Assembly (NCBI GenBank): GCA_002104905.1
Contig: MCFE01000537.1
Coordinates: 1-60,799, forward strand
From: Basidiobolus meristosporus CBS 931.73
Taxonomy: Eukaryota > Fungi > Basidiobolomycota
Direction of reading: 5' to 3'
DNA length: 60,799 bases
The notes beneath the pieces are model-generated. The model was not told the DNA's origin, ran no database searches, and worked only from the letters and a program-made list of their open reading frames with translations. Made by a program: the position numbers and the translations under genes. Positions 33,130 to 60,799 of this stretch are shown here, piece after piece (positions within the stretch are counted from its first letter, which is position 1; the number at the start of each line of letters is the position of its first letter).

Positions 33130-33379
33130 AAATTAAAGCCTTCTAAGGAAAGGCCCTATATTCGCCACAGGAGTAGGTGTGGGGTAGAGATGAATGATAT
33201 GGAGATTTGATGAATGGAGGCTCTAAGATTGGGAGGTGATCACCTGATAGGTTCGAATTTTACTCCTGAAAAGTAGGTAGCCCTTTTTGCCACTTCAGAT
33301 TCCACAATGGTCATACAAGCCACCATGGCTGTTTCCAAGTATACTGTTAAGTAGGAATGGTTGGAAAAGGTACCTGTTG

Positions 33380-33660
33380 CACATGCCTTCTTCTTCTTAT
33401 ATAGACCTTGAATATACCTGAACTAGCCTTATTTGATAGTCTGGGTACCTCTGTCTATGGTGAACTTTATCCCTAAGTGGTAACTGAACTTGTCTATATT
33501 GGACATTTGAACTCCTAAAATAGGCTGAATTTAGACTCTTGCAATGGTTTTTTGATTATTGGTGGCTATTGGAAGATCATCCACATATAGAGTTAGTAGA
33601 AATGTATTTGAACTATCTGCTTATAATAGATACTATAGTCAGTGTTATATCCAAGAGAAA
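33380..33660 (-). mobile_element. Decayed copia RT fragment
   Basis: Minus strand TDYSILL*ADSSNTFLLTLYVDDLPIATNNQ; nucleotide similarity to 35380-35580. Confidence 0.7.
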
Positions 33661-34175
33661 AGTGTAATAAAACTCCTGAATGAGTTAACTGAACCTAAGT
33701 GATAACTAAGTGCAGAATTTCAGAATTGTCAAGAGTGACAGAAATATTAGCAGAGAGGTTCTGGTCTAATATTGGTCTTGTATATAGCTGAGTTGGGCTA
33801 TAAAGGCAACAGAGTTGGTTTGCTATGCAGGCTAGGCTTGGTGTTCTTGGGAGTGCTAGGTATGCTAGGCTTGGGTAGATACTAGAACAGAATTGTTGAA
33901 CTCTTAATTTTGCTGAGACACAATCTTAATTTTGGTGAGACACACACTAAACCAAAAGGTTCAGTAAACTTTATTTATACTTTTCTGATCAAGTTGAGTT
34001 GGTATGCACCAAGAGACTGGACTAATTGAAATCTGTTGGGGTGTTAATAGGTACATAAGATAAATGAAATTTTGCATCATTAATCAGATGTCTTGGCTAC
34101 TGCTAAGTGGTTGGAGAGATCTCAGATGACTAATCACCTGGAAAGGCTAATCAGATCAGTTCAGGATGTAATGAC

Positions 34176-34523
34176 TGTTGTAAGAGTCTTGGAGATATTG
34201 GAAGTGATTGGGAGAACAAGTAGATTATGTGGTTCTCATTTAATAATTTATTGAATGTAAAAGTAGTATCTATACTTTTACATGGTCTTGGCATAACATG
34301 CACATAGAATGGTTAAGGAAGGTCCCAAGAACATGTGTACAAAGCTTGGGGCTGCTTGGATAACTTTAAGAATTCTCATGTTCTGGGTACCAGGTATCTT
34401 GGTGAAAATATTTGAAGTAAATCCCAACAAGGAATCTAGTCAGAATTCTCTAGGATTTGAAGGTAATGCTTAAAGTGACTCAGTTAGGTGAATATTTAGA
34501 TGGAGTTACAAACTTTTACAACA
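34176..34523 (-). repeat. 3' LTR of copia element
   Basis: TGTTGTAAGA...TTACAACA; colinear with 38500-38848; adjacent PPT on the minus strand. Confidence 0.95.
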
Positions 34524-37500
34524 CTCCCACTCAGCTAAATGTTCATACTGACTAGTCCTAATTTTGACCTAAGATATTCAAACTTGTCTCTAGCTAATGG
34601 TTTGGTAAATATGTCTGCAATCATTTCATCTGAAGGACAGTAAACTAAGCCAACTAAGTTATCCTCTATAGCTTCATGTATGAAATGATGTCTGATATCT
34701 ATGTGCCAAGTTCTTGCATGAAAAATTCGGAATTCTACCTAATTGTATACATCCTTGGTTTTCTTGAAATAAAGTAATAGGCATTTTTGACATAGGCCTA
34801 AATCTGTAAAAAGCTTTCATAACCACATTGCTTCTTTTGTAGCTTCACAGGCTGCCATATACTCTGCCTCTGCGGTAGAAGGTGCTATGGTTGGTTGCTA
34901 TCTTGAATTCCATGAAATTGCTCCTTTACAGTAAAGAAAGGTGTATCCTGTAGTGGATCTTCTGTCTTCCAAAATTTGTCCCCAATCAGCATCAGATTAT
35001 CCCACAAGATCTGGTTCTGAGTCCGTATAAGTGTATCTTAGGCAGATATCAGCAGTTCCTCTTAGGTATCTGAAAATCCGCTTAACTGCTGCAATATGAT
35101 CAGATGCATAGTTCTGATTATGTTGGCTGACAACTCCCCTGAGTATGTGATATCTAGCCATGTTCCAAGCATGATATATATCAGAATACCGGCCATAGAT
35201 TGATAAGGAAAGTCAGAGCTTTCAGATGGCACCAAGCTCTCTTGATTTGGCTGTGTTTTGACCAAGTTAAGGCTTGTCTCCATTGGGGTAGCTGCCAGTT
35301 TACAGTCTTCCATTTGGTACTTCTTTATTATATCATAAATATACTTGGATTGGCTTAGGGTGATATTCTGGGTACTTCTGCCTATGGAGAACTTTATCCC
35401 TAAGTGGCAACTGAGTTCTCCTAGATTGGACATCCTGAACTCCTTAGATAGGCTGGATTAAGTCTCTTCCAATGTTGCTAGGTTATTGGTGGCTAAAATA
35501 AGATCATCCACATTTAGAGCTAATAGAACTAGATTTGCTCTATCTGGATTACAGTATATACTATAATCAGCATTACACCTTTTGAAACTCAAAGATTCCA
35601 AATGAGAATCTTTCTTGCAATTCCAGGCCCTTGAGGATTGTATGAGACCATATAGAGACTTTTTAAGCTTGCAGACCAAATGGGGGTTATCTTGGCCAAC
35701 AAACCAATCAGGCTGCTCCATATGTACATCCTCATCAAGTTCTCCATTCAAAAATGCAGTTTTTATATCCATTTGACGTATGTAAAAGCTGTATTGGCTG
35801 CAATAGCCAATATCAATCTGATGGAATTAATCTTGGCTACCAGTGCAAAGGTCTGAGTATAGTCAAGGCCTTTTATTTGAGAGTCTCCTTTGGCCACAAG
35901 TCTTGCTTTGTATCATTCAATTGTACCATTGGCCTTGTATTTTGTCTTGAAGACCCATCTGCATCCAATTGATTTTTGGTAGATTGGTAATTTGACCAAG
36001 TCCCAAGTTTGATTTTCCATCAGGGCCTGATATTCCTCAGTCATTGCAGATCCCCAAAACTTTGTGTGAGGGCCATTTATGGCCTCTTTTACAGTCAGTG
36101 GCTCATCAATATGGACTGAATAGGCATAGGCTAAGTTTGTACACTCATTGATATAGTAATTTGGGCTATTTCTTGTCTGGTTGGATCTCCAGGCATTTGA
36201 TACTGGGATGATCACTTCTGGGATATTCCTGGGCACAGGTTTAGGCTGAACCATGGTTGTAGAGTCCTCTGGAGTGAAAAAATTTCATTGTTTTGCTCTG
36301 ATTCATTTCTGACAATTGGTGGACTTGAGATCAGATTTTTGTCATCATATGATGTCATTTTTTATGAAAATTTGAATTCTCATAAAGAAACACTTCCCTG
36401 GACTTGATAAGCTTCATTGCTTTGGTATTGTAGAGTCTGTATGCTTTACTCTTAATGCAGTAGCCCAAAAATATGCATTTTACACTTTTTGGCTCAAATT
36501 TTGACTGATTTTGGGGCAGTTTCTTGGCATATGCTATACACCCATTTATTTTTAGATGTTCTGCCATTGGTCTGTACCAATACCATGCTTTAAATGGAGT
36601 AGAATCACAAAGTATTCTGGTATAACTCCTATTTTAAGGTACACTGCTGTGGCAACTGATTCCACCCAAAACCACAGGATAAGTTTTGATCATGGATCAT
36701 AGATCTTGCCATATCAATTACTGATCTGTTTAGATGTTCTACTACTCCATTTTGTTGTGGGAAGTATGGTACAGTAGTTCCTTGCTTTTCCCAGGAATTT
36801 TGCAGAAGTGGCTGAAAAGTTTTGAGGTTTTTTCTCCACCATTGCCAGAGTGTTTTTTCTTGATTTTTTCACCAGTTTCTCTCCCCACCATGGCTTTGAG
36901 CTCCCTGAGCTTAGACAGAGCTTCTTCTTTTCTCCCCATGAAGTAGACCCATGTGTATCTTGTATAATCATCAACAAAAGTTATTAAATACTTCATCCCA
37001 CCTAAGGATAAATTTTGCATTGGTCCACACAGATCTAAGTGAATTAGATCTAATTTTTCTTACTTTGATCAACCCAGAGCTCTGGAACAGTTGTCTGGCT
37101 TGTTTCCCACTTATGCAGGCTTCACAGTGCTTCAAATTAGCAGGGGGATCAATTTTACTCTGGAAATTAGCTGATCTTTGATCAATTTTTGCAAATAATA
37201 AAAGTTGATGTGCCCAAATCTCCTGTGCCAAAGCATTGGTATTTCTTCATTTAAGTTACTTATATTGGCTTCTGAATATGACAGAATATATGTCAACTTG
37301 TATAGATTCTGATCTCTGATACCCAAAGCAATACGGACACCATTTTGAACAGTGATATTTCAAACAGAATTGTCAAAGCTGGAACTGTGTCCTTCTACAG
37401 TGGCCTTGCTCACTGATAGTAGGTTCTTGGCTATTTCTGGTACATAGGGTACATCTCTAAAGGTGAGTGTATGGCTTCCTTCACTGCTTCTAAGGCCTAC

Positions 37501-38499
37501 TTGGATAGTTTCTTGTCCCACTGCATCAAGTGTTCTATCATCACCCATGAAATCCTTGTTGATTGGAATTTCTTAATATTGGGTAAAAAGTTCTTTTTGG
37601 TGTGTAAAGTATTGAGATGCTCCAGAGTCAATATACCATGTCTGAGAATCCTTGTTTGTGATCATATTTAGTGCAGAGATGAATAGTTTCTCCTCAGTTG
37701 TTGCAGTATTTCCATATTTAGGCTTCTTTTGCTGATTATCACTCTTTTTGAGACACCAGCGTGATGTGTGTCCTTTCCTTTTGCGGTAGTTGCCAAACAG
37801 GTTGCTATTGCCTTTGTAAGGTCTTGGGTGCCTCCTTTGTTGGTTATCATTGCTTATTAAAGCCTTTTCTTCTTCCTTCTTATTGGTGCTTCACTTTCTT
37901 GATTCTTTGTCCAGGAGCCTTCCATATATGTAATTTAAGGTCAAATTATCAGTTCTGGACTCTAGGGCTGATACAAGGCCCTTGAGCTTGTCTATCAGGC
38001 TATTCAGGATGGTTACTATCACATCCACTTCAGAAGTTGGTATGCCCACAGATTCCATCTCATCTACCAGCAGGGTATATCTGTTGATTACATTTTTCAT
38101 TTCTTCTCCTGGCTGCATCTTTGTAGTAGAGAACTTTTGTCTCAGATACATTTTCTTAGCAGCTGAACATGACTGGTAGGTGTCTTCTAATGCGTTCCAG
38201 GCATTTTTTGCCATTTTTGATCTTGAGAATTGAATCAGCAATTTGTCTTTAAATCAAAGCAAATGCAGTTAAAGGCACTTTGTTCTTTCTTCTGGTACTT
38301 TAAGGCTTCCTCTCCCACGTTTTTAGGAGGGCATTCTTCTCTCATGACAATATCCCAAAGGCTTCTTTCTTGTAGCAGGATCTTCAACTTCACCTTCCGT
38401 GCTTGGTAGTTAAGTCCATCCAACTTTTCAGCAGAGTGGAAAGTTCCAGTAATAGCAGTAGTTGACATTGCAGAGAGTGACAGCTTGGAGCTCATAGCC

Positions 38500-38848
38500 T
38501 GTTGTAAGAGTCTTGGAGATATTGGAAGTGATTGGGAGGACAAGTAGATTATGTGGTTCTGATTTAATGATTCATTGAGTGTAAAAGTAATACTTACACT
38601 TTCTCATGGTCTTGGCATAAGAACCATGTAGAATAGGCTAAGGAAGGTCCCAAGAACATATGTGCAAAGTTTGAGGCTGTTTGGACTACTTTGATGATTT
38701 TCATGTTCTGGGTACCAGGTATTTTGGTGAAAATATCTCAAGTAAATCCCAACAAGGAATTTAGTTGGTATTCTCTAGGATTTGAAAGTAATCATATAAG
38801 TGACTAAGTTAGGTGAATATTTGGGTGGAATTACAAATTCTTACAACA
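38500..38848 (-). repeat. 5' LTR of copia element
   Basis: TGTTGTAAGA...TTACAACA; followed on the minus strand by GGCTATGAGCTC (PBS-like). Confidence 0.95.
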
Positions 38849-38989
38849 ATGACCACATGAAAATTGATCAGGTGTGACAGCTGAAAATAGATGCTGAGAA
38901 GTGATTGAATAAACCATAACAGAGATTAATTATGTTAAAGTTAGGGAAAATCAGTTAGGGTACTAGATTTTCTAACACAGTGAAATTGG

Positions 38990-39670
38990 CCAAGTTTAAA
39001 TGTTGATGCACAACAGTCAGCAGTATGTCTTAAGAAACTCAGGCACTTCAAATAATCTATCTTGCAATCTGGATTCTTGATAACTCTTTGGGACCATGTA
39101 GAGATTTTTTGAGCTTGCAAAGCGTAGGGGCTTATCTCATTCAATGCACCCATGTGGTTGGCGCACATATGTGCCCTGAGTAGACTTCCCATTCAAAAAT
39201 GCAGTTTGCACACTCATTTGATGAACAAAAACCTTAAATTTGAGTGCACAAGCCATTATTCATCTTATGGTATTAAACTTAACCACTAATGCAAAGGTAT
39301 CAGCGTAGTCTAGCTCATTAGCTTCAGAGTATTGTTTAGCTACAAGTTTGCCTAAGTATCTTCCATCTGTGACAACAGCCATATATTTTGTGTTGGATAT
39401 TCATCTGCATCAACCAATTTGTGGTCAATTGGTGATTTAATCTGGTTCTGAGTATGCATATCTACTTGGGCCTGATACTCTTCATTTATTGCAGATCTTC
39501 AAAGCATTGTCTGAGGGCTATTTAGGGCCTCTTTACTATCAGAGGTGCTTGGTATGGAATTCCTTGGCATAGGCTAGGTATATGCACGCATTAAGATAGT
39601 AATTTGGCCCATCTCTAATATGGCAGAATCTTCTGGCTTGTAATTCTAGAATGATAACATGTCTGGGCAC
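38990..39670 (-). mobile_element. Older decayed copia RT fragment
   Basis: LCKLKKSLHG and a SAINEEYQA-type region, similar to 35600-36200 but more degraded. Confidence 0.75.
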
Positions 39671-39679
39671 ATTGGACTA

Positions 39680-40730
39680 TGTTGCTGTCAAATGTGTGAG
39701 ATCCATAGGGTATATTTCATAGTTCTACCACATTATTGTTATCAAAATGCCAACACCAAGAGCATTGTCTTCCCAGTAAGCAAATCTACAGAAGGCAGCA
39801 TGTAATTGCAGCAAAGTTGGTAAGCTTTCAGCCATTGTCTGGATTACCAAATATATTGGAAACCAGAGATACTTAAGATAGAGGGTACTTGCTAGAGTAA
39901 AGCTTTCCACTAGGTACAATGCATATGATTTCAAAATATCATAATACTAAAAACCAAGTTGTACATGGGTCATTTCTAGCTAAATGTGCCATACAAGATA
40001 CTGGCAAAATTTGAAAGAATTAGCAAGATATTATAGAGTATCTGCTACCCAATGAACTTCTCATGGGCTCCAATGCATATTTATACTCATATGTAACAAT
40101 ACAAATGCAAGGACCGGATGAGCTGGATATGTATATATTCAAGAGCCCTTCTGAAGCCATTTCTACCCAGTGCACATGGGAAGCATTGGGAGTCATATTT
40201 TGACATTGTAGGAATACCTATCCAGAAACAGATCACTAATTTAAGCTTGATGCACTTACAGCTTTTATGCCAGACATTTGTGCCAGGATTTGAGTGGCTA
40301 TACTATAAGCATAAAGCTGAATGCATTGATCACTGTCACTACTGTATCCATTCTCTACTCCATCTTACCTTGTGTGTGGAAAATATTGGTACTTGCTTCA
40401 CCTTGTGGGAATGTTCTATGGAGTGGTTGTGTGGGGAGATACAAAGACAAGTCAAGTTGCAGGTACTATCATACCCCAATCTCATAAAAAATATTACCAT
40501 TGAGACCATCATTGATGTGATGAGTTGTTATATGGAGACACCTATGCCTTTGGCATTATGAAGCTAAGCAGCAGAGTTGGGCAGTGTGCAACAAGCAGCC
40601 AATTCTATTAGGACATATTACTTAAGTATGCCTGGTTTCTCTTTATTACAAGGCAGTTTCTGCACTATTTAATTCAGAATCCACCCACAAAAGTACCAAA
40701 GCACACCTATAAGGGGGACTAGAATCCAAT
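39680..40730 (+). mobile_element. CACTA/EnSpm-like transposase fragment (copy 1)
   Basis: WICIYSRALLKPFLP...FEWLYY...IHSLLHL...IG..FTLWECSMEWLCG; inverted homolog of 41830-42960. Confidence 0.8.
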
Positions 40731-41279
40731 AGTTTTTGTTATTTGAGTTGTAGATGGAATATACAAGGTAGTAGTGAGAAGCAAATAAATTAGGGTGATT
40801 CCAATATACCCCCTATGAAAATAATTGTGATGATCCTGCCAAGAGGCCATCACATCTATACAAAGACTGTTTAAAGGAAATGCACCCCAGATTTCACAAA
40901 AAACTTGTACTAAATTTTTCTTCACAGCAACACATAAGTGCTTTTGATTGATTCTTTGCCAATTATCTCAATTTCTGATCCTAGAGACACATCACCTCCT
41001 ACATTTATGGGCATTGGTTAGCTATTACTTCTTTTTCACACACCTTTCATGCTGACACACCCTATGTAAAATAATTTGATCCTGTGGGTGGATCCAATCC
41101 AGATCATCCAACAAGATCCGGTTTAGAGACCATCATAATAACAGCAGCTTGGAATTAGTGACCCTCCTGACAATCTTGTAACAAGATCATGACGGTGTTT
41201 TGCAAATTTTACAGCCAAATAAAGGGATAAAACTTGACAATTTTTGATTGGTGCTGTGAAAATATTTGCATGGTATTGT

Positions 41280-43480
41280 TGCAGTCTTTCAGCACTCCAT
41301 TACTATTTTAAGTGGATCCAGTTGGCCTGAACTTCAAATTGCCTTATATGGCAAGAAACTTGATGGTATTTTGATGGCCTCACAGCAAGACTCTGATGGC
41401 TTTTTCTTGGCAGTATGACGGCCTGCTGCTGGTTCTGTATGATGCTACCGTACCAATTTACCAAATGGTATTTCCTTTTTCTACCTCCCCTTGTGCAATT
41501 CATGTATTCCACTATATAATCACCTTTCTTTATTTGCTTACCTACTACAACCGTGGATATTCCACAAATAGTTTGAATCAAAAAAAACTATGGCCTCCTG
41601 CCTACTGACCTCTACAAATGCGCACACCTGTTGCAATTGACATACTTCTATCACATCAACTTTATGGCTTTTTAGTGTGATACTTGCAAAGTTGCCATAT
41701 ACCTTGTACTGCTGGTAGCATATGCATCTTGCAAACATATGCTTGGTTGTTGCCACTTTGGCCATGAATACCTCCTGAATATTGGCAAAGAGCTTCTTAG
41801 TATTTAGCCAATATATTCCTTCTCCCTGCTGGATTCTAGTCCCCCTTACAGGTGCGCTCTGGCTTTTGTTTGTGTGAATTCTGTATTGAATGGTGTAGAA
41901 TTTGGCTTGTGACCACAAGAAATCTGGCATATCTTGGTGAAGTTTTCCTGATAAAAATTACTTGCTTGTTGCACCCAACCCAACTTTGCATTACTTGACT
42001 GAATACCCATGCATTGGGGCTGTTTAGCTTTGTAATGCCATAGGCATAGGTGTCTCCATGTGCACATTTGTCCTCAGTACTTTCCAACTCTTTCTGGCTG
42101 TCCTCTATGTGCCAACTCATCACATCCATGACGGACTTGAAGGTAATATTCTTGATGAGATTGGGATATGGTAGTACCTGCAACTTGACTTGTCTTCCTA
42201 TCTCCCACACATCTGCTCCATAGGAAACTCCCAAAAGGTGAAGCAAGGCCCAATATTCTCCACACACCATGCAAGATGGAGTAGAGAATGGATACTGTAG
42301 TGGCAGAGATCTACGCATTCAGCTTTATGTTTGTAGTATAGCCACTTAAATCCTGTCACAAACTCCTCACACAACAGCTGTAGATGTGTCAAGTTGGCAT
42401 TGGTGATCCGCTTCTGGATAAATATTCCTACAATGTCCATATATGACTCCCAATGCTTCCAATGTACTCTTGGTAGGAATGGCTTCAGAACACCACTTGA
42501 ATAAATACATATCCAGCTCATCCAGTCTTTGCATTTGTATTGTCACATATGCATATGAATATTAAGTGGAGCCTGTGAGAAGTACTTAAGGTAGCAGATA
42601 CTCTATAATATCTTGCCAATTTTTTCAAACTTCTCTGGTATCTCAAAGGGCTCATTTAGCTTGAAACGCCCCATGTACAACTTGGTCATCAGTATAGGGA
42701 TATTGTTGAAAAGCAAATGCATTGCTCCCAGTGGAAAGCTTTTGCTCCAACAGATACCCTCTGTCTTAACTATCCCTGGTTTCCAACTGATTCCATATTC
42801 TGGCCAGTGGCTTATAGCTTGCCAACTTTACTGCAATTGCATGCTTGATTCTGTACATTCTCTCTGTGGATAGATGTTGTTTTTAATGCTGGTGTTTGGG
42901 TAATAATAATGTGTGTGAGTTGGGGAGTAAATCCCCTGGATCTCACACACTCAACAGCAATACCATCCATTGTGCCCAGAAAAACCTGTTATCTTGCTGA
43001 TGGCTGGGGTATCCCCAATGCAGATAATTATATGTGCTTTTATATGATGGCCATTAACCGTTATCCTGCTGGAAAGCATACAAAATTTATCCAGCAATGG
43101 ATACAGGTAGCTATCTAGGTTGGATGGTGATTTAGGCCCAGATACCAGTGAGACTACCATTGATTTATTGCTCTGATACTGTAAGGTGGGTGGCAGATTC
43201 AGATTGATGAGAATCAGTGGCTAGCAGAATTTGCTGGTAGAGTACTTGTTTAATGAGAATCCATCAAGTGCTAAAGCAAATGCATGGTCATACATACCTT
43301 CAAAGTAGCCTTTGCTTCTTAGCTGTTTGTAATGTTTGCCATTGAATATATTAGACTTGTCCTTGTAATACTTCCTATGCTGTCTGCATGTTCCATGGCT
43401 GAGAGGCTTGCCACAGTAGCCACATGGGCTTTTTTCTCTTCTCTTATGGCATTGAGTCAAAGTAGTCTTGTCCATGGGGC
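41280..43480 (-). mobile_element. CACTA/EnSpm-like (CMC) transposase pseudogene, most complete copy (copy 2)
   Basis: IFNGKHY...FALALDGF, GPKSPSNLDSYLYPL, IGDTPAISKITGFSGHNGWYCC, HSLLHLAWCVENIGPCFTFWEFPMEQMCG; motifs typical of Transposase_21/DUF4218-type fungal CMC elements. Confidence 0.85.
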
Positions 43481-43697
43481 AAACAGTTTGACCTTCAACA
43501 ATGTGAAGCTATTATATCATTTTTTGGTCAATACTCATGTGAATTTAAGACAGTCTTGTATTTGAGACATTGCACCTACATGAATGTAAGATTCAATGAT
43601 GACCCACCATAGTAAGAATCATAAATAAAATTGTGGCACCACATACACACAAATATGTAACACTATTTCCCCTTTGGTTTGACTCACTTCCATATAC

Positions 43698-45044
43698 ATG
43701 CCACCAAAAAATAAAGCAAAGTTGTCTGGTTCTCAACCAAACCCCACCACTGATGACAACAGAAGAATGGTTGGACAACAGCTTGCTTTGACAATCAGTG
43801 CAACAAGCAGGGCTACATCCAAAAAAGGCCCTGTGGACAGTGTGCCCATTGAAGGTAATAATGTGGACTCCTCAGGCTCTCAGCCAAGTAGGCAATTGAG
43901 AAGCTCTGTGGAGCCATAAGCTGGCCATTATGCTCAGGCAGATTAGAATGTAGCAAATGCAGTACCCTCAGTTGAAGATCAGCAGGTGGCCATGATAACA
44001 TCACCACCACCCATATTAGGAACTATGTTGTCAGCTCATACCAAAGCATTAATGAAGCAATTAGTTGCAGTGGCTGATAGGATAGATGAAATGGCCCAGA
44101 GAGATCAGGCGGTAGTCCAGAAATAGAATGAGTGGATAATACATGTAGAGCAATCAATATCCCAGGTAGGGAAAGCAGTATCTTTGCTGCAGAGAAGGAA
44201 CTCAAGTAGCTCAATGTCACAGCCCAGAATTGAGCCATTTCTTGATGTAACAGCAGAGGAACACCATACAGTCTTTGAAGCACAACAACAGTGCCCAAAG
44301 ATAAAGCCCACAGAAAAAGCTATCACAGTGTGGGAGGGAGACATTGTGGTGTTTATACCAAAGCCTAAAAATCAGAAGACTTTGAAGATCTGTGAAGCTG
44401 TTGAGTGCAATAATAAAGAGTGGGCTAATATATAAGAGGCCGTCAGAAGTCTAGCACACCGTTGCCTTAAGGCCAGCATACCATGGGACCATCAGGAACT
44501 CAAGGCCAAGCAGAATGCACTTGACTTGTTCCATGAGCATTATCCTGGATTCAAACGGGCAAACAAATTTTGGGCCAGCATTGATATGCTAAGAAAGTAT
44601 CTTAAGAATAGCAGAAACTATCAAAGGCAGAAGAACAAGGGTGCCATGGCTAAAAACCAGCAGCTTCTTTGAGAGCCAGTTACATGCAGGGCAAAAAGCT
44701 CCAGACAAGCGTCAAAGAGATGTCAGGCAGCTGGAAGAGTGCCAATTAAGGGCAAGTAGACAGACATGGATGCACCAGCACAATATTTATCAAGGAAAAA
44801 GCGTGGTACCACTCAAGAAGCACCCAGTCAAAGCAGCAGTGAAGGACCTGGCAATGATAAAAACCAGCTGCTTTTACAGGAGCCCATCACAACTACAGTT
44901 GAGAGCTCAAAACAAGATGAAAAGAAATGTCAGGTTGCCAGAAGAGTGCCAATAAGGGACAAGCAGGCCAAAACAGATTTGTCAGAGCAGAATTTATTCA
45001 GGAGAAAACATAGTTCTTCACAAGCATCATCTGTATCCAATTGA
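43698..45044 (+). pseudogene. Decayed 449-codon accessory ORF divergent from the CACTA transposase
   Basis: Track ORFs at 43698, 44184 and 44766 share one frame; 6 internal stops and no frameshift. Coiled coil followed by a helical domain (AVRSLAHRCL...PWDHQ...YPGFKRANKFWASIDMLRKYLKNSRNY). The 3' end runs into copia sequence at about 45025. Confidence 0.75.
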
Positions 45045-47237
45045 TTATTGGTTACTACTAATTTGGCTAAGTCCCAAGTTTGTTTTTCCATATGGGCATG
45101 ATACTCCTCAGTCATTGCAGATCTCCAGAAGTTTGTCTGAGGGCTATTTAGGGCCTCTTTTACAGTCTGGGGTTAATCAATATGGACTGAACAGACAAAG
45201 GTTAAGTTTGTACTACCATTTGTTTAATATGTTGAGCTATTTGTGGACTTGCAAAATCTCTGGGTCTGGGAGACTAAAATGATCACTTCTTGGATGTTCT
45301 AGGCACTGACTCAGGCTGCACTTAAAGTTGCACAGTTCTCTGGAGTGAGGAAATTTTCATTGCATTATTCTGACTTAATTCTGACCATTGGTAGACCTGA
45401 GATATGATACTTGTCATTATCTAGGTCATTTTTTGTGAAAAATTCAATTTATTAAGATAGCATTGCTTGGCTTGCTCAGCTTCTTTGCTTTTGTATTGCA
45501 GAATCTGAAAACCTTACTCATATTGCAAATGCTCCAAAATATGCATTTCACACTTTTGGCTCAATTTTGATGGATTTCTGGCTGGTTTCTTGGCATGTGA
45601 TGTGCACCAAAGTGTTCTTAGATGCTCTCTACCTGGCCTGTATCCAAGACATGCCTCAAATGGAGCAGAAGCACAAAGTAATCTGCCATAGCTCCTATTT
45701 TCAGGATATACAGCGGTAGTAGCTGATTCCACCAATAATCAAAAGATAATTGTAGATCATGGATCATAGATCTTGCTGTATCAATAGTTGATCTGTTTGC
45801 ATATTCTGCCACTCCATTTTGCTGTGAGATGTATGGTACAGTGGTCTCTTGCTTTATCCCAAGAGCTTTGCAGAGTTGGATGACAAGTTTTGAGATATAT
45901 TCCCCACCATTGTTGGAGTGTATTTTCTTGATTTTTGCCAGTTTCTCTCTCCACCATGGCTGTAAGCTTCCTGAGCTTTGACAAAGCTTTTTCCATGCTT
46001 TCCATTCAGTAGACCATATGTATCTTGTAAAATCATCATTCATGGTGATTTCTTGCTTCATCCCACATAAGGATAAATCTTTCATAGATATACACAGATC
46101 TGAGTGAATTAGATCAAATTTTTGCCCAATATGTATCAACCCAGAGCTCTTGATCTGCTGTTGGCCTTGAGTCCCATTTGTGTAGATTTCATAGTGCCTC
46201 AATTCTTCTAGGGGATCAATTTTAACTTTGGAAATTATCAGATCTTTGACCATTTTGCTCAAATAATCACAGTTGATGTGTCCAAATCTTCTATACCAAA
46301 GCATTGATGTTTATACATTTAAGTTATTTGTGTAAATTGCAATACTTGACACCCAAAGCAACATGGGCACCATTTTGATCAGTGATCCTGCATCCAGGGT
46401 AGTCAAACCTGAAACTGAGAATTTCTGCTGTAGCCTTGCTTACAGATATTAGGTTCTTGACTATTTTTGGTACATAGAGTACATCTCTGAAGGTAAGTGT
46501 GTGGCTTCCATCACTGCTTCTGATGCTCACCTGAATAGTTCCTTCTCACACTGCATCAAGCGTTTTAATGTCACCCATGATAGCCTTCTTGATTGGAATC
46601 TCCTCATATTAGGTAAAAAGATCATTTTAGTGTATAAAATGTCAAGACACTCCAGAGTCAGTATACTGTGTCTGAGAATCCATGTATGTGGTCATATTTA
46701 GTGCAAATATGAAAAGTCTATCATCAGTTGATGGAGCATTTCCCTATATAGGCTTTTTGTGGTTACTATCTCTTGTTTGAGATAAAGGCCTGATGTCTGT
46801 CCTTTGCTTTTGTAGTAATTGAAAGACAGGTTGCTATTGTCATAAAGGGACTTGCATACCTCTGTTGTTGGTTATTACTGCTTATTAAAGCATTCTCTTC
46901 TTCCTTCTTGTTTATGCTTAATTTTCTTCATTCAGCATCCAGAAGCCTTCCTCTATGTAACTTGAGGTCAAATTCTCAGTTCTGGTCCCTAGGGCTAATA
47001 CAAGGTCCTGTAACTCATATATTTGGCTCTCACTTGCTAATTAATTTTTATATGGTCTGTGCATAACTATCACATAGAATAGGCTAGCAAGGTTTCAAGA
47101 ATATGTGTGCAAAGTTTGGGTCTGATTGCATAACTTTGAGGTCTTTTATGTACTGCATACCTTATATATTTGTGAGAATATTCCAGATAAGTCCCATCAA
47201 GAAGTTTGGTTAGTATTCACTAAGATTTGCAGGTAAT
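45025..47237 (-). mobile_element. Truncated copia, same family as 34176-38848, with partial 5' LTR (about 47060-47237)
   Basis: LWYRRFGHINC, DLIHSDL, QQNGVAE, SAMTEEY...TWDL. RT core and most of gag deleted; LTR remnant matches 38620-38800. Confidence 0.88.
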
Positions 47238-47615
47238 AGACTTGTTTTGTTGTATAGTGCCACATGAAGCCATGAGTGCCAAATGATACAACAGTGTGCC
47301 AGAGAGGCCAAATGGACCTATATTTATTCACAGAGTGTGAGTCAAAGCTCCTTATCTTCATGCAAAGCAGCCCCTGTGTTTCACCCATTTTGCTGGAGAT
47401 AATCCACTTTTTGACTTTTTTTTGGGACCTGTGTTGTGCAAGATGTTTAAGTGCACAAAAGACTGAATACTTGCATCTGGTACTCAGTACCAATGGCACC
47501 AAAACTCAAGCTTCTGTGGCATGCAACATGTCACAACAATGAATGTCACCATCTTTGTCCACTGGCACTATCTGGCTCTATAAGTACTTTGTGTAAGCTT
47601 TACTTTAGATGTAAT
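47238..47615. mobile_element. Half copy of the fold-back element (one arm plus spacer)
   Basis: AAT|AGACTTG...; colinear with 53121-53500; inserted in the copia LTR remnant. Confidence 0.85.
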
Positions 47616-47629
47616 CCTAACCCTAACTT

Positions 47630-48378
47630 GGAATTGCAAGAAGCAACCAACTCTAGCCCTACTAACAATCAAAGCTGAATATAGGGCTGCTTGTCAAGAA
47701 ACCAAGGAGGCTATATGGCTACAAAAATTATTCAAAGAACTAGGTATTGACTCAGATGAATCACCATATATTTACAAGGACACTCAAAGCTGTATTTGAT
47801 TAGCTAGAAATCCTACTAATCATGCCACAACTAAGCACATAGATATATAACACCACTTTGTGAGTGAAGCTGTATAAAACAAATTAGTAGAGTTAGTATA
47901 CTTCCTAACTGACAAAATGGTGGCAGGTATATTGACAACACTAGCTTGCGCACAATTGGAGAATCTCAGAGAATAAGTAGGATTCAGTAATTATTTAATT
48001 AAGGTGGAGTGTTGAAATACAGGACTATTTGGTATCATTCAGCAGCTAAAAATTTACTTAACAATTCTGGACAAGTCTTGGTCATTGTAGGACAAGCTTA
48101 CAGCCCTAACTGTGCCACTTCCTTCAGATCCATAATCTAATGATTATTACCCAATAGTTAAGTTCAAACTAGCACTTTGACAAAACATTATGTACTAACC
48201 CTGAAAATGTAAGAAAATGCTCCTGAATATTGAGAAACCCTCCTTACTTAGTGTTACAGTTCTATTACTTCTACATTGGTATAAATACTGAGCTTCCTTA
48301 TGAATAAGCAACAGTTCAACCATTATCACTCTTTCTTGATAAGTTTCTTTTATCAAAATAACTTTTTAAATTGCAACA
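47630..48378 (+). mobile_element. 3' end of another copia (RNaseH, PPT, LTR 48010-48378)
   Basis: KKQPTLAL..IKAEY.AAC...KEAIWL...TKHIDI*HHFV...DKMVAGILT; AAGGTGGAG then TGTTG...CAACA LTR of 369 bp containing TATAAATA. Confidence 0.85.
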
Positions 48379-48629
48379 GAGTCTGCATATTTACTCTCAA
48401 TGAGTGCTCTTTTAATATGCCCATCTTTGGATGTAGATATGCTTGTCGCACTGAGTGCAACAGCAGGCTGTAGTCCCACTGTTCTCCTGCTGCTGTTAGT
48501 AGTTGGGTTTGGTTAGGAATCAAAGAGATTGTTCAATTATTTGGTGCCATATATAATGATTTTGGTCAACCAGTTGAGAAATAGTACTACAAATACAGGT
48601 GCATATGGTGCCACTGCTTTATTTATAAT

Positions 48630-48660
48630 AGACTTGTTCCATTGGATATTACTACATAAT
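48630..48660. mobile_element. Isolated terminus of the fold-back element
   Basis: AAT|AGACTTGTTCCATTGGAT, identical to the reverse complement of the terminus ending at 53853. Confidence 0.65.
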
Positions 48661-48714
48661 AGGAAACAAATCCAACAAATGATATCAGCTCTAATATTTC
48701 ATGGGGATATTTCA

Positions 48715-50390
48715 GATTCTTGATGACTTCAATCTTCTTGGGGTTTAGGGTCACACATGTGCTAATCACTATGTGTCCCAGGTAATCAACATGTTCCTTC
48801 AAGAATTAACACTTTGCTAGCTTGCCACAAAACTTGTTCTCTCTTAGCTTTTTCTAGACCTTTTTAGTGTGGATCAACTGTTTCTCATCTGTCTTGTTGT
48901 CTTCCATATGTCATCTAGGTAAGTTACCACAAACCTGTCTAAGCACTCCTGATATTTCATTGCACCAATGACTGATCTTTTGTCTCTTCATCTCTTCCAA
49001 CTCCAATGGACTCATTTTGCAAGGTGTCTTACTCACTGGAGGTCTATCACCTGTATCAATGGCATTATACATATCTTTGAATAGTAGTAGGCTTACAAGT
49101 TCATCTGGAAACCCATCTAAATATTCCTTCAAAGGAGTCTGGACCTTCTGGGGTGCTGAAGTAGTGGAGGCCTCCTGTAATACTGCCAAGCAGAACATCT
49201 GGGTACCTTTTCTAAGTACTCTTCAGAGCTGTTTCTTGCCAAGTTTACTTGTTTCACACATGCTAGAATTGACCAATTATAATCTTGAAGTGCAGGTAAT
49301 AGCTCATAGGTCTTGTTGTTCTTGTGGATATCAGTGACATGGGTTCTCCAGTTGATTGACAAATTACAACAAAAAAGCCAGGCTTTTCCAAATATAACTT
49401 CAAGCTTGCAGCTCCCAAGTATATAGTCCTGTAGGTCATTTTCATAGTCATTGATCTTTACTCTGACAGGCTGAGTAGTATAGTTAATTATATGAGAATT
49501 CCCATCAGCTGTTGCAACCAAAGTTTAATTGGTGGATTCCAAGCTGATTACAGCCTTCAAGGCCAATTGCTCTGACATGTACTCATGTGAGGCTCCTAAG
49601 TTAGTTATGATCATGGCAGGTACTCCATTCATTAATCCACTCAGGTACAATAGCTTTCTTGAGTTTTAGGTCATTTGAGTTGGGAATTCTTTTGTCATAT
49701 GGATGGTGAGTTCTGAGCCTTCTCTGAGTTCTTCCTTCATGTTACTGTGCTCAAGGGCTTCAATAAGGCTGAAGATTCTTGTTATATGGTGTCCATTTCT
49801 TCTCTAAGAGCAGTACTTTGCAATATGTCTATGCTAGTGGCAATTAAAGCAAAGTACTTCATACATCTTCTGAGGGGGATTCTTCTACATTGCATCTATT
49901 TCCATTGGCATTGCTTCTGATGGACTTCTTGAATAGCAATTATAGCCTCTCTGATTAATCATTGTGGGCTTTCCAACTCCAAACATAGCTCAGTCATAGT
50001 CAATGGCAATCTTGATGCCTTCTTTAATAGTCTGAGGTCTTTGATAACTCACTTCCTTGCAAATTCTTTCTTTCAACCAAACAATAATATATTCAACTTG
50101 ATGCAGGGGGTCCATTCTTTGAATATGTCCAAGTATACATCTGTACTCATAGATGTACTCTTGAGCCACTCCTTAGGACTAGGGATTCTTCAACTTCCTT
50201 CTTGGTAGTGTTTGCTAGTATGGGGGTTCAAAAGCATCCTGAATCTCCAAAACAAACTCATCTCAGGTAGAGATTGTAGATTTTCCCATCATGGTAGCTG
50301 ACCTGATCTTGTTCTGGTACCATTGTAAAGCTGCATCTGCCAAATAAGAAGCGGTATAATACAATTTGCTGATATACCAATTGGCTAACC
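48715..50390 (-). mobile_element. Partial Ty3/gypsy (gag, PR, RT remnants), same family as 51655-57312
   Basis: Colinear with 54660-56660 apart from a deletion of the RT core (EEMKRQ joined to RQVC.NLPR); no LTRs seen. Confidence 0.85.
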
Positions 50391-50559
50391 GTAAAGCTGC
50401 TCAATTTGACTAAAGACTGGTCTAATTTACGCATTCAATTAGTAGATCATAAAACAATTATACAATTGCAAGTCCATGTTAAACTGGAGATGTATTTATT
50501 CATATGACATTCTGAAGCAATTTTTACCTAGAGTGAATTGGAACAATCAGGAGTCATCT

Positions 50560-51540
50560 GTTGACATTGCAGAAATATTTATCAAGAAGAAGGTTGCAAA
50601 TACCTATTTGGCTCACCTATAGCTTTTATGCAAGAGGTTTGTATGGAATTTCTGCTGTTAGACTACAAGCATAAAGCTGAACAAGTAGATTGATGCAACT
50701 ACTGCATCCATGCTCTATTCTAACTTGCCTTGTATGTGGAGGATATTGGGCCTTGCCTCACTATTGAGAGTTTTCTACAGAACTACTGAGTGGGGAGTTA
50801 GGAAGACAAGTCAAGTTGCAGGTACTACCATATTGCAATCTCATCAGGAATAAAACCTTAAAGTCCATCAAGGACTTGATGAGTTGGTGCCTTTTGGGCA
50901 ACCAGGAAGTGCCTGAGTACAGAGGACAGATGTTCATATGGAGACTCCTATATCTCTGCCACTAAGAAGCTAAGTAGCTGCTTTGTGTGAGTAACCAGTC
51001 AAATAATGCAAAGTTGGTTGTACACAACATACAGCTAGTTTTTATTGGGACAACTCTACCAAAGTATGCCAGATTTCTTCTCTGCACAAGCAGATTTCTA
51101 CACCATTCAACAAGGAATGCATAAAAGCTAGATCCAGAGCATAACTATAGAGGGACTAGAGTCCAGCAGAGAGAGGGATATCTTGGACAAGTATCACAAC
51201 TAAAAGCAATAATGCTGAGGTAATGTTAGTATGTCAATGCCAGTAGATGTGTGCATATGTAGAGGTAATTAATCTTGATGACATAGGTTTTGTTGATTCA
51301 AGCTCTATGTGAAGTACCCAGAGTAGTAGTTGGTAAATAAGTAAGTTGAAGTAATTCTACAACTTATTATATGGATGGTGCATGGAGAGGCAGTAAAAGG
51401 AAATACTACTTGGTGTATAAATTTTGTGGCATTGTGCAGTATTAGCTGTAGGCTGCTTTACTGCTGTTAAAGCACCAACAGATAGACACAGCAAGGCTGT
51501 CACAATACTGTCAAGCATTTTCTCAATTATGGCAATTAGA
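50560..51540 (+). mobile_element. CACTA transposase 3' fragment (copy 3)
   Basis: Inverted homolog of 41300-42430 (YKHKAE..D.CNYCIHAL; GRQVKLQVLPY). Confidence 0.75.
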
Positions 51541-51542
51541 TG

Positions 51543-51654
51543 TGTTACAAGTCTTGATATAAGGGTTATAGAGGAATGGGGAGTTTGCTAGTCTTGTACT
51601 GACTAAACCTTGAACTGATTTATATTCAGGTTCTGGCAGCTCCTGTTCTACATT
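51543..51654. repeat. 112-bp partial gypsy LTR in tandem with the full LTR
   Basis: TGTTACAAGTCTTG...CTACATT repeats the start of the LTR at 51655. Confidence 0.85.
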
Positions 51655-54600
51655 TGTTACAAGTCTTGGTATAAGAGTTATAGAGGAATAGGGAGTTTAG
51701 CTAGTATTGTATTCACTAAAACTTGAACTGATCTATATTGAGGTTCCAGCAGCTCCTTATGTACATTTTGCCAGATCAATTGCTGACTAATTGTTCTTCC
51801 TAATGTAGGTGGTGGCTGGTGACTCATTTGATTGCATCATCATGACCCAATAAGATCCTACTTAATAAATTGATATCTGTCTGATAAGGATCTGTTGATT
51901 CATATGCTGACTGATGATTCTAATTTGAAAGATAATACTGATATACTGATAAGCTAAACATATAACTAATTCATTTACTAAAAACTGAACTAACTTAAAC
52001 ATTCAAGCGGCAGATCATAACATTCTCCCCTACTAAAGTTGAGAGGGTTCTCCTGAATCTTTTTTTTTGTGACATCAATATCTTGATGGTTCAGTAATAT
52101 CAGCAAGTCTTGCAAGCTTGAGTCTGTCCCTGTGCACTAAGTCTTCCCGGATATTGCCATGTTTGTCCACTAGTTGGTAAGTTACAAATGGACATTCTCT
52201 GATGATCCTGAATGGTCCTGTCTATTGTAGCTCAAACTTCTTCCAAGTGTTGTTTCTTAGCAATACAAAGTTCCCAACTGTCAATGCTGCTAGTGCTATA
52301 GTCTTATCAAATCTCTGCTTCATCTTTTCTGCACATTGAGATACTTTGGTCAGTGCCTCTTGATGTCTTTATTCCAGGTGCTGGTGTCTACTTGGCTGAC
52401 TGAGTTCATCTTCTAAGGCATCTGTAAGCTTTGGTTATGTGAGATCTCCTGGAATCCTTGGTTCACATCCATACACTAAGTAAAATGGCAATTGTTGGGT
52501 GGGGTTGTGTACTCTGACTCTGCATGCAAAGAGTGCTTGGTCAATATACTCATCCCATCTACTGACAACTCCATTTGCATACTTGGTCAGCATTTTTGCA
52601 AATAATCCATTAAACTGTCCAGTGACTCAATTAGTTCTGGGGCAATATGCTGAGGTTTTTAAGTGTTTGATCTGCTGCATTTCCAGGTAAGCTTCCAATG
52701 TCTTTGCCATAACGTTTGCGCCTCTATTGGCTAGAATCTCTACAGGGCATCCAAGCTTCATAAGAATCTCATGGTATAATGAAACTTGCAACTTCTTGCT
52801 CACTGGCTATAGGCATAGCTTTAGCCACTGGCCATTTAGTGGCATGGTCAACTGCTACTAGGATCCAACGGTTGCATTTCCTGGTGGTTGGCATTCTTCC
52901 AATGAAGTCAACACCCCATCTCTCAAGTGGCCTTACAGGCTCCAAGGGTAAGACATCAGCAATTCTCTGTGGTTGGCCTCGGTTGATTAGGCAATTTGGG
53001 CATGTTTTCACTAGCTTCTCAATGTCATGTTTCATTCTGGGCCACCATGCTTGGGCTTTCACAAGGCTATAGGTTCCTTAAATTCCAAGATGTCCATATA
53101 CATTGTGTAGCTTATGTATTAGACTTGTTTGGTTGGATAGTGCCACATTGATCCATGAGTGCCAAATGATGTAATGTGTGCCAGAGAGGCCAAGTGAACC
53201 TATACTTGGCCACAGAGTGTGCTACATAGCTCTGCATCTCCATGCAAAGCAGCCCCTGTGTTTCACCTATGATGCAGGAGAAAATCCAGTTTTTGATGTT
53301 TTTTTGTGGATCAATGTTGTGCAGGATGTATACAAGCACAGAAGAACTGACAACATGCATCAGGTACTCAATACCCATGGCACTTTGAAGCTAGCTCCTG
53401 TGGCTTGTAACATATCACAAAAATGCATGGCACTGTCTTAGTCCACTGGTACCATCTGGCACTATAAGTGCTTTGTATAGATCTTACTTTAGGGCTAACA
53501 ATTAAATAGAGTGCCAGATAGTGCCAGTGGACCAAGATGGTGCCATGCATTTTTGTGACATGTTACAAGCCACAGGAGCTAGATTCAGAGTGCCATGGGT
53601 ATTGAGTACAAGATGCATATCTTAAAATCTTTTGTACTCTCACACATCCTGCACAACATTGACCTACAAAAAAAGGTCAAAAAATGTATTTTCTCCAACA
53701 CAATGGGTGAAACACAGGGGCTGCTTTGCATGAAGATGCAGAGCTATGTTTCACACTCTGGGGCCAAGTATAGACTCACTTGGCCTCCCTGGCACACTAT
53801 GGCATCATTTGGCACTTGTGGCTCATTGTGGCACAATCCAATGGAACAAGTCTATTAAATCCAGGCAATAAGCAATAGGGCTTCCATCAACAGTTTGGTA
53901 GAGTGTTTCATCCTGTACTACAAACTTGCTAGCTTCATCCTGGATTATCTTCTTGATATCTACATCCACCTCATTAGGAATGGCTTGGTCCTCCAAGTAC
54001 TTTGGTATTAGGCTAGGCCAATCTGATTCATGCACCAAGTTGAGTTGTGGAACTTGTTCTAATCTTGATAAGGCATCAGCAGCCATGCTGTTTTTTCCAT
54101 GACAGTGGACAATCTCCTACTCAAATTGCTGAATGTATTCACTCCATCTTGCCATTCTTCTAGAGAGTACCATCTGAGTAGGTATATACTTGAGGGAGGC
54201 ATGATCAGTCTTCACAGTGCATTTGACTCCTTCATTATAGCATCTCCATGTCTTTAGACAGTGTGTTTTACCAGGCCTCTCCTTCTCATGCACTGGATAG
54301 TTTTGTTCTGCTGAGTTCAGCTTCTTGGATTCAAAGGCAACAGGGTGGTCCTTTCCCTTGTGTGCTTAGCTCAACACTCCACCAATTGCATAATCTGAAG
54401 CATATGTGCACAGAGTAAACTCCTTTCTTGAGTCAGGTATTCTTAAGCTTGGCAGCTTAGCAAGTACATTCTTGAGCGTCTGGAAGGCAGTCTCACAAGC
54501 TAGGTCCCACTTGTAGGTATTGACTTTTTTGAGGGTATCAGTTAAAAGGGCTGCAATACATGCAAAGTACTTCACAAATCTCCAATAGTAGGAAACCATT

Positions 54601-57312
54601 CCAAGGAATGATCTGAGCTCTGATATGCTATAGGGCTGCTTCAGAATCTCGATAACTTCAACCTACCTAGGGTCTAAGATTACTCCTGTGCTTGTCACTA
54701 TATGTCCCAGATAGTCATTGTGTTCTTTGAACAATTCACACTTGGGTATCTTGCCATAAAGCTGGTTCTCTCTTAGCTTCTTCAAGACCTTTTCAATGTG
54801 CATCAAGTGATCCTCGTCTGACTTGCTGTATATCAATATATCATCTAGGTAGATTATGACAAACTTGTCTTAAGTACTCCTGGAAGACAGTCTGCATCAG
54901 GGTCATGAATGTTGCAGGGGTATTTGTGAGGCCAAAACTCATGACTAAGTACTTGTAATATCCATATCTGGTCTTGAATGCTGTCTTAGGGATGTCTTCT
55001 GGCTTCACCCTAATCAGGTTGTATCCTGACATGAGGTCAATCTTGCTGAAAATAGTGGCTTCATTGAATTGGTCCAAGAGCTCATCAGTCCAAGGTATGG
55101 GGCTCTTGTTCTTCATTGTAACTGAGTTGAGGGCTCTGTAGTCAATGCACATCCTAAGTGTTCCATCCTTCTTCTTCACAAAAAGTACTGGTGCTCCCCA
55201 AGGTGACTTGCTGGGTCTGATATATCCTTACTCCAGTAACTGATCTATTTGTCTCTTCATCTCTTCCAACTCCAATGGACTCATTCTGCAAGGTATCTTA
55301 CTCACTGGAGGGCTATCTCCTGCTTCAATGGCATGATCCACATCTCTGACTGATGGTAGGCTTACAAGCTCTTCTGGAAATACATCTGAATACTCCTTCA
55401 AAAGAGTCTGGATCATCTGGGGTACTGGAGTAGAGGAATCCTCCTGTAATACTGCCATGAGGAACATCTGGGTGCCTTTTCTTGGTGCTCTACCAAACAG
55501 TGTCTTGCTAAGTTCACTTGTTTCATACACACTGAAATTGACCAAGTCAAAATCCAGTCTGGCAGGTGATAGCTCATAGTTCTTATTGTCCTTTTGGATC
55601 TGAGTAGCATGGGTTCTCCAGTTGATTGATGGATTACAACAAAATAGCCAAGTTTTTCAAGTACAAGGTCCAACTTGCAGTTCCCAAATATAAATGCCTC
55701 TAGATATTCTTCATAGTCATTGATCTTCATCCTTACTGGCTGAGTAATATGGTTGATTATGTGAGAGTTCCCATCAGCTGTTGAGACTGAAGTTGGTTTG
55801 GTGGGTTCCAAGTTGATTTTAGCTTTCAAAGCAAATTGCTCTAACATGTACTCTTGCAATGCTCCTGAGTCAATCCTGATCTTGGCAGGTACTCAATCAA
55901 TTACTCCATTCAGGTATAATAGCTTTCCTGAGTTTGAGGTCATCTGGGATAGGTATTCTTCTGTCATATGGAAGGTGAGTTCTGAGTCTTGTTCAAGCTC
56001 ATGCTCCATGTTACTATGCTCAAGGGCTTCAATATGGTTGATTGTACTTGATGGCTGGAATCCTTCACTTCTCTAAGGGCAGTACTGTGCAATATGTCCC
56101 TGCAGGTGGCAATTAAAGCAAAGTCATTTCTTCTTACATTCTTCTCAGGTTGGATTTTTCTGCATTGCATCTATTTCCATTGGCACAGCTTCTGATTGAC
56201 TTCTAACATAGTGGTTGTAGCCTATCTGATTAGTCATTGTGGGCTTTCAACGCCAAACATAGTTGAGTCATAGTCAATGGCAATCTTGATGCCTTCTTCA
56301 ATAGTTTGAGATCTTTGATAATTCACTTCCTTGCAAGTTCTTTCTTTCAACCCATTAGTAAAGTATTCCACTTGATCCAGGGGGTCCATTTTTTCAATTT
56401 GTCCAAGTAGTCATCCTTACTCTCCAATGTACTCTTGAACCATTGCTTTCTGTCTGAGTGTCTTCAGCTCTCTTCTTAGTAGTGTCTGCTGACCCAGGGG
56501 CTCAAAAGCATCCTGAATATCCAACACAAACTCACCCCAGGTAGAGATTGTAGAGCATCCCATCATGGTGGCTGACCTGATCTTGTTGTGGTACCACTGC
56601 AAAGCTGCATCTGCCAGGAAAGAGGCTACATAATGTAACTTGCTTTCTGGAGCAATTCCTGTAGCCTTGAAAGCATCTTCATTCTGGAAAAGCCAAGTTC
56701 CTAGGCTTTCATTGACTCTACCATGGTGCTGGTTGACCTTCACACTAATGTTGCTCTTGACAGGGTTTTACTGGCTCTGTGCCATGGTGGTCATTCCTTG
56801 TTGCTGCTGGATAAGGATCTGTAGTGGCTGTTGCTGCTGTGCCAGGATTTGCTGCATAGCATTCTTCCATTCTGTATTTTCAGACATCTTGGGGGAGGCC
56901 CTTCTATCTTCAGGAGGGAAGTTTCTGGTTAATGCCACAACCAATGTTACAAGTTTTGGTATAAGAGTTGTAGAGGAATAGGGAGTTCAGCTAATATTAT
57001 ATTCACTTGAACCTGAACTGATTTATATTGAGGTTCCAGCAGCTCTTTATATACATTTCACCAGATCAACTGCTGACTATTGTATTTCCTAATGTAGGTT
57101 GTGGCTGATGACTCATTAGGTTGCATCATCATCACCCAATAACATCCTACTTAATATATCTACTTCTGTCTGATACGGATCTGCTGATTCATTTTCAGAC
57201 TAATGCTACTGATTTCATAGATTACAATGATATACTGAAAGGCTGAGCATGTAACTAATTAATATATCCAAAAACTGAACTAAATTAAGCATTCAAGCAA
57301 TAGATTGTAACA
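51655..57312 (-). mobile_element. Full-length, inactivated Ty3/gypsy LTR retrotransposon (no chromodomain seen)
   Basis: 368-bp LTRs 51655-52022 and 56945-57312. Domain order gag, CCHC (LCFNCHLQGHIAQYC), PR (IDSGA), RT ([15 protein letters not shown]), RNaseH, IN (GHLG, CPNC, WGVDFIG). PPT TAGGGGAGAA; TGG-starting PBS-like site. No TSD found. Confidence 0.93.
53121..53853. mobile_element. Fold-back / MITE-like non-autonomous DNA element, 733 bp, inserted in gypsy integrase
   Basis: Inverted arms about 53121-53463 and 53510-53853, spacer about 46 bp, termini AGACTTG...CAAGTCT, flanking ATT/ATT. Removing it restores the integrase frame (DLIHKLHNVYGHLG). Confidence 0.92.
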
Positions 57313-60617: not shown

Positions 60618-60799
60618 AGTCCCCTCTAAGAAACCCCTTTACTCTAAAGACACCCTTTAGACACCCCTTTAGACACCCCTTTGGTCTAAAGACCCCTTTA
60701 AGAAACCCCTTTACTCTAAAAGAAACCCCTTTAGGCACCCCTTTAGTGTAAAGTACACTTCAGAGACCACTACAAGAAGCCCCTTTACTCTAAAGACAC
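60618..60799. repeat. Degenerate minisatellite (AGA[C/A]ACCCCTTT with interspersed ACTCTAA)
   Basis: About ten C3-4TTT units; continues to the window edge. Confidence 0.85.

Follow-up and report, generated by a model that had tools for sequence, protein, structure and literature searches.

Near-complete loss of CG dinucleotides in a transposon nest of Basidiobolus meristosporus: decay in place on both strands, with a bias against TCG

One contig of the fungus Basidiobolus meristosporus CBS 931.73 (MCFE01000537.1, assembly GCA_002104905.1; 60,799 nucleotides, analysed here at its full length and referred to as the window) places genes that keep their CG dinucleotides directly beside a nest of degenerate transposons from which CG has nearly vanished. 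This raises the question of whether CG was lost after the transposons had inserted and, if so, whether it was lost through passive decay or through a directed process resembling repeat-induced point mutation (RIP), two possibilities that an initial annotation of this DNA had left side by side. Here we find that the copies lost their CG in place once they had parted, on both strands and near saturation, and in the repeats only. The reading that we favour, with a probability of roughly 75%, is that methylated CG in the transposons was deaminated, that this decay was passive, and that the elements were poor in CG already at the time of insertion.

CG deficit and in-place loss in the repeat nest

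The window splits at ~33.3 kb into a genic half on the left and a repeat nest on the right. The nest (33401-60799) holds 62 CG against 1063 expected, an observed/expected ratio (o/e) of 0.058, with ~94% of the expected CG gone, while the genic half (1001-33254) has a CpG o/e of 0.78 and a GpC o/e of 0.99. Using sliding 1-kb windows, CpG o/e was 0.00-0.18 in all windows from 34 kb to the end of the stretch and 0.53-1.12 in all windows across 1001-30000, and the contrast between near CG-free transposons and CG-rich genes, judged only by eye in the initial annotation, is thus borne out by counts. The boundary is sharp, with the final genic CG at 33254, the first repeat homology from 33393 and the following CG at 34728. 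Furthermore, within the genic half CpG o/e was 0.79 inside long stop-free, coding-like stretches and 0.76 in the non-coding-like DNA outside them, and therefore the contrast is not an effect of coding versus non-coding sequence.

G+C content is also lower in the nest than in the genic half (39% vs 47%), which is compatible with a general AT-biased mutation pressure, or a heterochromatin base composition, acting without methylation. However, CG alone is missing from the nest, where o/e is 1.14 for GpC, 1.36 for TpG and 1.40 for CpA, and contexts other than CG differ at similar rates. Relative to the genic level, the nest lacks ~768 CG and this deficit is equalled by a surplus of ~775 TG+CA (arithmetic on dinucleotide counts). 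Such dinucleotide specificity contradicts an explanation by base composition, which we regard as extremely improbable.

Two elements in the nest retain both long terminal repeats (LTRs). The stretch at 34176-38848 is a Ty1/copia LTR retrotransposon on the minus strand, as fits its two LTRs, target duplication and domain order. Its LTRs, at 34176-34523 (low-coordinate end, the 3' LTR of the minus-strand element) and 38500-38848, have TG...CA ends and are 86.8% identical, with 46 mismatches in 348 aligned bases, and a perfect 5-bp target duplication, ATGAC, flanks the element at 34171-34175 and 38849-38853. The internal region (34524-38499) is reduced to short open reading frame (ORF) fragments on the minus strand, which match the Pfam families gag, Pol beta-barrel, integrase core, SH3-like and RVT_2, and it contains 12 CG versus 150 expected; neither LTR contains any, against 9.5 expected in the low-coordinate one. 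At the CG boundary the nest opens with a copia fragment of 250 bp (33393-33642), which is 77% identical to the reverse transcriptase region of this element at 35320-35570 and has the start codon of a neighbouring 615-aa gene (31282-33129, minus strand) ~260 bp away.

Likewise, the stretch at 51655-57312 is a Ty3/gypsy LTR retrotransposon on the minus strand, as fits its two LTRs and a domain order of gag, RVT_1, RNase H and integrase among the minus-strand ORF fragments. Its LTRs, at 51655-52022 (1 CG, 10 expected; termini TGTTAC...(C/T)(A/G)TAACA) and 56945-57312 (1 CG), are 84.7% identical, with 56 mismatches in 367 aligned bases, and its degenerate internal region (52023-56944) contains 9 CG versus 223 expected. 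The flanks, ...CATT and CACT..., match at best in three of four positions, and any target duplication is obscured by an adjoining partial LTR copy. This copy, at 51537-51655 directly before the low-coordinate LTR, covers the first ~115 bases of the gypsy LTR and is 86% identical to 51649-51768.

The sister LTRs differ as TG versus CA at four sites, all exactly where the initial annotation had placed them. In the copia pair these are 34303-34304 (CA) versus 38627-38628 (TG), with ACGT as the putative ancestor, and 34441-34442 (CA) versus 38766-38767 (TG), with TCGG. In the gypsy pair they are 51769-51770 (TG) versus 57059-57060 (CA), with TCGC, and 52016-52017 (CA) versus 57306-57307 (TG), with TCGT, the last of which overlaps the 6-bp terminal inverted repeat TGTTAC...GTAACA, within which the initial annotation had placed it. 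As a null for this discordance we shuffled alignment columns, and as a mirror control we counted AC versus GT, which arises from reciprocal transitions at GC or AT. The four TG/CA sites in the LTR pairs compare with a mean of 0.73 in shuffles (P(>=4) = 0.005) and with no AC/GT site. Across all 27 repeat alignments in the window there were 116 TG/CA sites versus 24.0±4.9 in shuffles (maximum 41), making this by far the commonest adjacent double difference, with AC/GT at 27, the other double-transition pairs at 15-26 and CG/TA at 4. The excess held in a non-redundant subset of alignments (53 TG/CA versus 13 AC/GT, p = 7e-7), and the enrichment of CG-context change that the initial annotation had anticipated between LTRs is present there and also in the wider repeat alignments.

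The aligned copies share no CG between any two of them, as against 187 shared GC. From the excess of discordance together with the lack of shared CG, it follows that the copies parted with CG and that each lost it independently, by C-to-T change on either strand. Moreover, C/T differences before a conserved G numbered only 8, versus 526 conserved TG, and since such differences are nearly absent, CG loss must be saturated.

The same pattern is seen in the further copies. A second, related copia copy at 45028-47237 (minus strand), 77% identical to 35956-37982 and with an LTR-like piece at 47052-47237, differs from the first at nine TG/CA sites versus two AC/GT sites. An unclassified repeat family, represented at 41460-43352 with other copies at 39662-40728, 50460-51414 and 57858-59941, matched no Pfam family in any of these segments (39.6-43.4, 50.5-51.4 and 57.9-59.9 kb). 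In an alignment of three of its copies, TG and CA occur together in 12 columns and no column has CG throughout, as against 2 columns with both AC and GT and 16 with GC throughout for the control. A fragment of a second gypsy copy is found at 48656-50370 (minus strand), 77-81% identical to 54585-56644. All copies in the nest are old, with pairwise identities of 67-87% in the window's repeat alignments, and when metagenomes were scanned for the longest transposon ORF, only distant relatives emerged, at 49% identity or less. Two ORFs of the window, looked up by exact match, had no hit.

CG content at insertion and dating of the LTRs

We then estimated how much CG the repeats had carried when their copies separated, using a model in which decay turns CG into TG or CA with equal probability in every copy, such that half of the ancestral CG ends up discordant, and correcting the estimates for the AC/GT background and for later changes. 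This gave ~5-6 CG in each LTR at insertion, an o/e of ~0.5-0.6, and an o/e at separation of ~0.6 for the unclassified repeat, ~0.30 for copia coding sequence, ~0.21 for gypsy coding sequence and ~0 for the fold-back family described below, as compared with 0-0.1 in these repeats at present.

These values bear on the possibility that the repeats were free of CG before they inserted, through long residence in a methylating host or through selection for CG avoidance, and have changed little in place. The coding regions, at just 0.21-0.30 when their copies separated, and the fold-back family at ~0, point in that direction. However, the excess of TG/CA discordance is proof that the copies still had CG when they separated and lost it independently afterwards, and the LTRs and the unclassified family have fallen from ~0.5-0.6 and ~0.6, respectively, to 0-0.1 now. 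We therefore consider this account very unlikely as an alternative explanation, and CG-poor sources are instead a partial contributor to the deficit. By these estimates the elements would have been CG-poor already at insertion (o/e ~0.2-0.6), and the deficit would be partly inherited from their sources and partly added later. The claim of the initial annotation that CG was mutated after insertion to near saturation stands as regards loss in place, on both strands and with no shared CG remaining, but a large share of the deficit appears to have been inherited. The estimates do not amount to families that were CG-free when young, which would have spoken against that claim, although the low values at insertion go part of the way towards them.

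The fold-back element is a palindrome of 747 bp (53114-53860) with arms that are 83% identical, nested in the gypsy element between RNase H and integrase, and it has no CG versus 34 expected. It showed no TG/CA excess over the control, either between its arms (2 vs 1) or between pairs of family members (1-2 vs 1-2), and this family may have been CG-free already while it was spreading. A related half-copy lies at 47233-47608, adjoining the LTR-like piece of the second copia copy.

CG decay also affects the dating of insertions by LTR divergence, which the initial annotation had expected to overstate age. The bias exists but is small, at under a tenth of the differences: 4 of the 46 copia mismatches and 5 of the 56 gypsy mismatches are CG-related (~9% of LTR differences), and leaving these sites out lowers the divergence from 13.2% to ~12.2% for copia and from 15.3% to ~14.1% for gypsy (arithmetic). 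Saturation sets a ceiling on it. CG sites are worth masking when LTRs are dated in the Basidiobolus genome, with a small correction for old copies and an expected, proportionally larger one for young copies.

Substitution spectrum, strand pattern and the bias against TCG

Passive and directed loss can be compared through the spectrum of substitutions, their strand pattern and their rate. The repeat alignments revealed no hypermutated context outside CG (CpA, TpC or others) and no excess of CpA-to-TpA change; C/T differences amounted to 0.10-0.22 per site in each of the twelve contexts other than CG, those before A being no commoner than those before T, and, at sites with conserved flanks, non-CG transitions and transversions stood at 484:415 (1.17). 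The RIP indices of the nest were 0.81 for TpA/ApT and 1.55 for (CpA+TpG)/(ApC+GpT), neither of which reaches the RIP range (usual thresholds ~0.89 and ~1.03, respectively). Neurospora-type RIP resembles the nest in that C-to-T and G-to-A changes pile up in repeated DNA, but its signature is absent here: the target in the nest is CG and not CpA, the indices differ as given, transitions are not in excess outside CG, and no RID is listed for the host. Along the copies, a runs test detected no clustering of TG and CA outcomes by strand (55 runs versus 54.8 expected, z = 0.05), and nothing therefore points to processive deamination of single strands, a trace that repeated rounds could nonetheless wipe out.

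Per-copy survival was ~0.04-0.08 for CG and ~0.6-0.68 for other dinucleotides, which puts the rate of CG transitions at an estimated, roughly 7-10 fold excess over that of other transitions, a lower bound owing to saturation. An excess of 7-10 fold is about that of methylated CG in mammals. With this rate excess and the long age of the copies, passive decay is sufficient to account for the loss. The right-hand 27 kb is an old, dead pile of transposons, made up of one copia and one gypsy element with both LTRs, fragments of both, unclassified repeats and the fold-back element, and we propose that the host would methylate CG cytosines within these repeats and not within genes. Methylated cytosine would then deaminate to thymine, turning CG into TG on the top strand or into CA through the bottom strand, independently in each copy, and the long life of the copies (13-30% divergence) would leave nearly all CG gone. 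The decay would be passive, with no dedicated mutator.

What is known of the host and of other fungi is consistent with such a scheme. B. meristosporus is listed with DNMT1, two Dim2-like enzymes, DNMT2, UHRF1 and HELLS, while DNMT3, DNMT4 (RID) and DNMT5 are not listed and there is no experimental entry for 5-methylcytosine (5mC) (PMC10538959, supplementary table). In the early-diverging fungus Rhizophagus irregularis, CG methylation is concentrated on transposons (PMC8647823), and the same article, citing Bewick 2019, gives fungal methylation as highest in repeats. The nest is like the transposon CG methylation of R. irregularis, Agaricomycotina, plants and vertebrates in its CG-only deficit in repeats, its TG/CA surplus and its spared genes, and the DNMT1/UHRF1-type maintenance toolkit listed for B. 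meristosporus (PMC10538959) is a further likeness. It is unlike these systems in its marked extra loss of TCG/CGA, and in that Basidiobolus is known here from sequence alone.

CG loss is fastest where T precedes CG, and at such sites it is ~ten times as complete as at the rest. In the nest, the o/e of TCG (CGA on the other strand) is 0.009, versus 0.06-0.10 for ACG, CCG and GCG, whereas in the genic half TCG is the commonest CG context, with an o/e of 0.92. Only 5 of the 62 surviving CG in the nest carry T on the 5' side or A on the 3' side, as compared with 643 of 1219 (53%) in the genes. Discordant sites, which mark CG in the ancestors, occur in all CG contexts and provide an internal baseline, with T making up 43 of 185 flanks (23%). 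Set against the 5 of 62 among survivors, this baseline puts TCG survival ~five-fold below that of other CG. To our knowledge, such extra TCG/CGA loss has not been described for passive CG decay.

A comparable pattern is the TpCpG hypermutation of Pucciniomycotina (Microbotryum, Puccinia, Melampsora and Rhodotorula; Horns et al. 2012, PMC3318451), which likewise affects repeats only, changes C to T at CG and prefers a 5' T, with a RID homologue reported in neither group. There, however, the effect is reported to be confined to TCG, while the nest has lost at least ~90% in every CG context with TCG fastest, and Basidiobolus, unlike Pucciniomycotina, lies outside Dikarya.

A rival account is a RIP-like, repeat-triggered mutator, of the kind described in rusts and anther smuts, which would deaminate TCG, and other CG more weakly, in duplicated DNA during the sexual cycle. 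The depletion of TCG relative to the other three contexts, the near restriction of surviving CG to those with neither a 5' T nor a 3' A, the TCG ancestry of three of the four discordant LTR sites, the same trinucleotide bias reported in Pucciniomycotina (PMC3318451, PMC10502011) and the near-total loss of CG all fit a mutator of this kind. Yet CG without a preceding T is also ~90% lost, while partial matches to TCG and other CG contexts are reported not to be elevated in Pucciniomycotina (PMC3318451); T is not enriched among flanks of the losses that followed separation (43/185); strand runs are lacking; the 7-10 fold rate excess matches that of methylated CG decaying passively; and no RID/DNMT4 is listed for B. 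meristosporus (PMC10538959, supplementary table). We consequently judge a RIP-like mutator to be unlikely, and we infer that the TCG bias reflects a modifier of the efficiency of methylation, deamination or repair and is not proof of a separate mutator.

Several points weigh against passive decay of methylated CG and have to be set beside this assessment. Known preferences of CG methyltransferases do not predict the strong extra loss of TCG, and the TCG bias of rusts and anther smuts has been interpreted as a RIP-like process (PMC3318451). All copies in the window are old, and what separates passive from directed change is how fast young copies lose CG. The estimates of CG at insertion are rough and come from small counts (two discordant sites per LTR pair), and literature searches found no methylation data, CpG-depletion paper or 5mC mapping for Basidiobolus. 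On balance, with no strand runs, an ordinary non-CG spectrum and the observed rate excess, the data lean towards passive decay, with a directed process less likely.

Other features of the window and significance

Outside the nest, two CG-poor patches stand out. The first, at 1-802, contains zero CG with normal density afterwards and has no homology to the right-hand nest, and it is probably the margin of a further repeat at the window's left end. The second, at ~29.6-30.4 kb in the genic half, coincides with a probable small inverted-repeat element at 29576-30312, a candidate of 737 bp with ~8 CG and 16-nt arms that are 94% complementary and 705 nt apart; the arms differ at one site, TTTGG vs TTCGG. 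Within the nest, 5 of the 62 surviving CG fall inside 113 bases at 60252-60364, near the right end and close to a short tandem duplication at 60616-60794.

The description of the host as a fungus outside Dikarya agrees with the best matches of the Band 7 gene (2405-3340, minus strand), which are in Basidiobolus: B. meristosporus CBS 931.73 at 90% and B. ranarum at 76-79%, with further Basidiobolus paralogues at 68-83% and Glomeromycotina and Mortierellomycotina at 69% or less. The figure of 90% may mean that the family is rich in paralogues, or that the DNA comes from a strain different from the reference.

Discussions of early-diverging fungi usually treat them as organisms that methylate adenine and have little cytosine methylation. 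With only ~6% of the expected CG left, next to genes that retain theirs, the nest provides strong indirect evidence of long CG methylation in Basidiobolus repeats. The comparison of sister LTRs yields, from the DNA itself, proof of decay in place, an estimate of the CG content at insertion and a correction for LTR dating. Finally, the TCG bias links the Basidiobolus lineage to an unexplained pattern in rusts and smuts. It is quite unlikely, in our view, that Basidiobolus shares with rusts and anther smuts a RID-independent, repeat-directed cytosine mutator that prefers TCG, but if this were true, such a defence would be older than the divergence of Dikarya from zygomycete-grade fungi and would differ in mechanism from Neurospora RIP.

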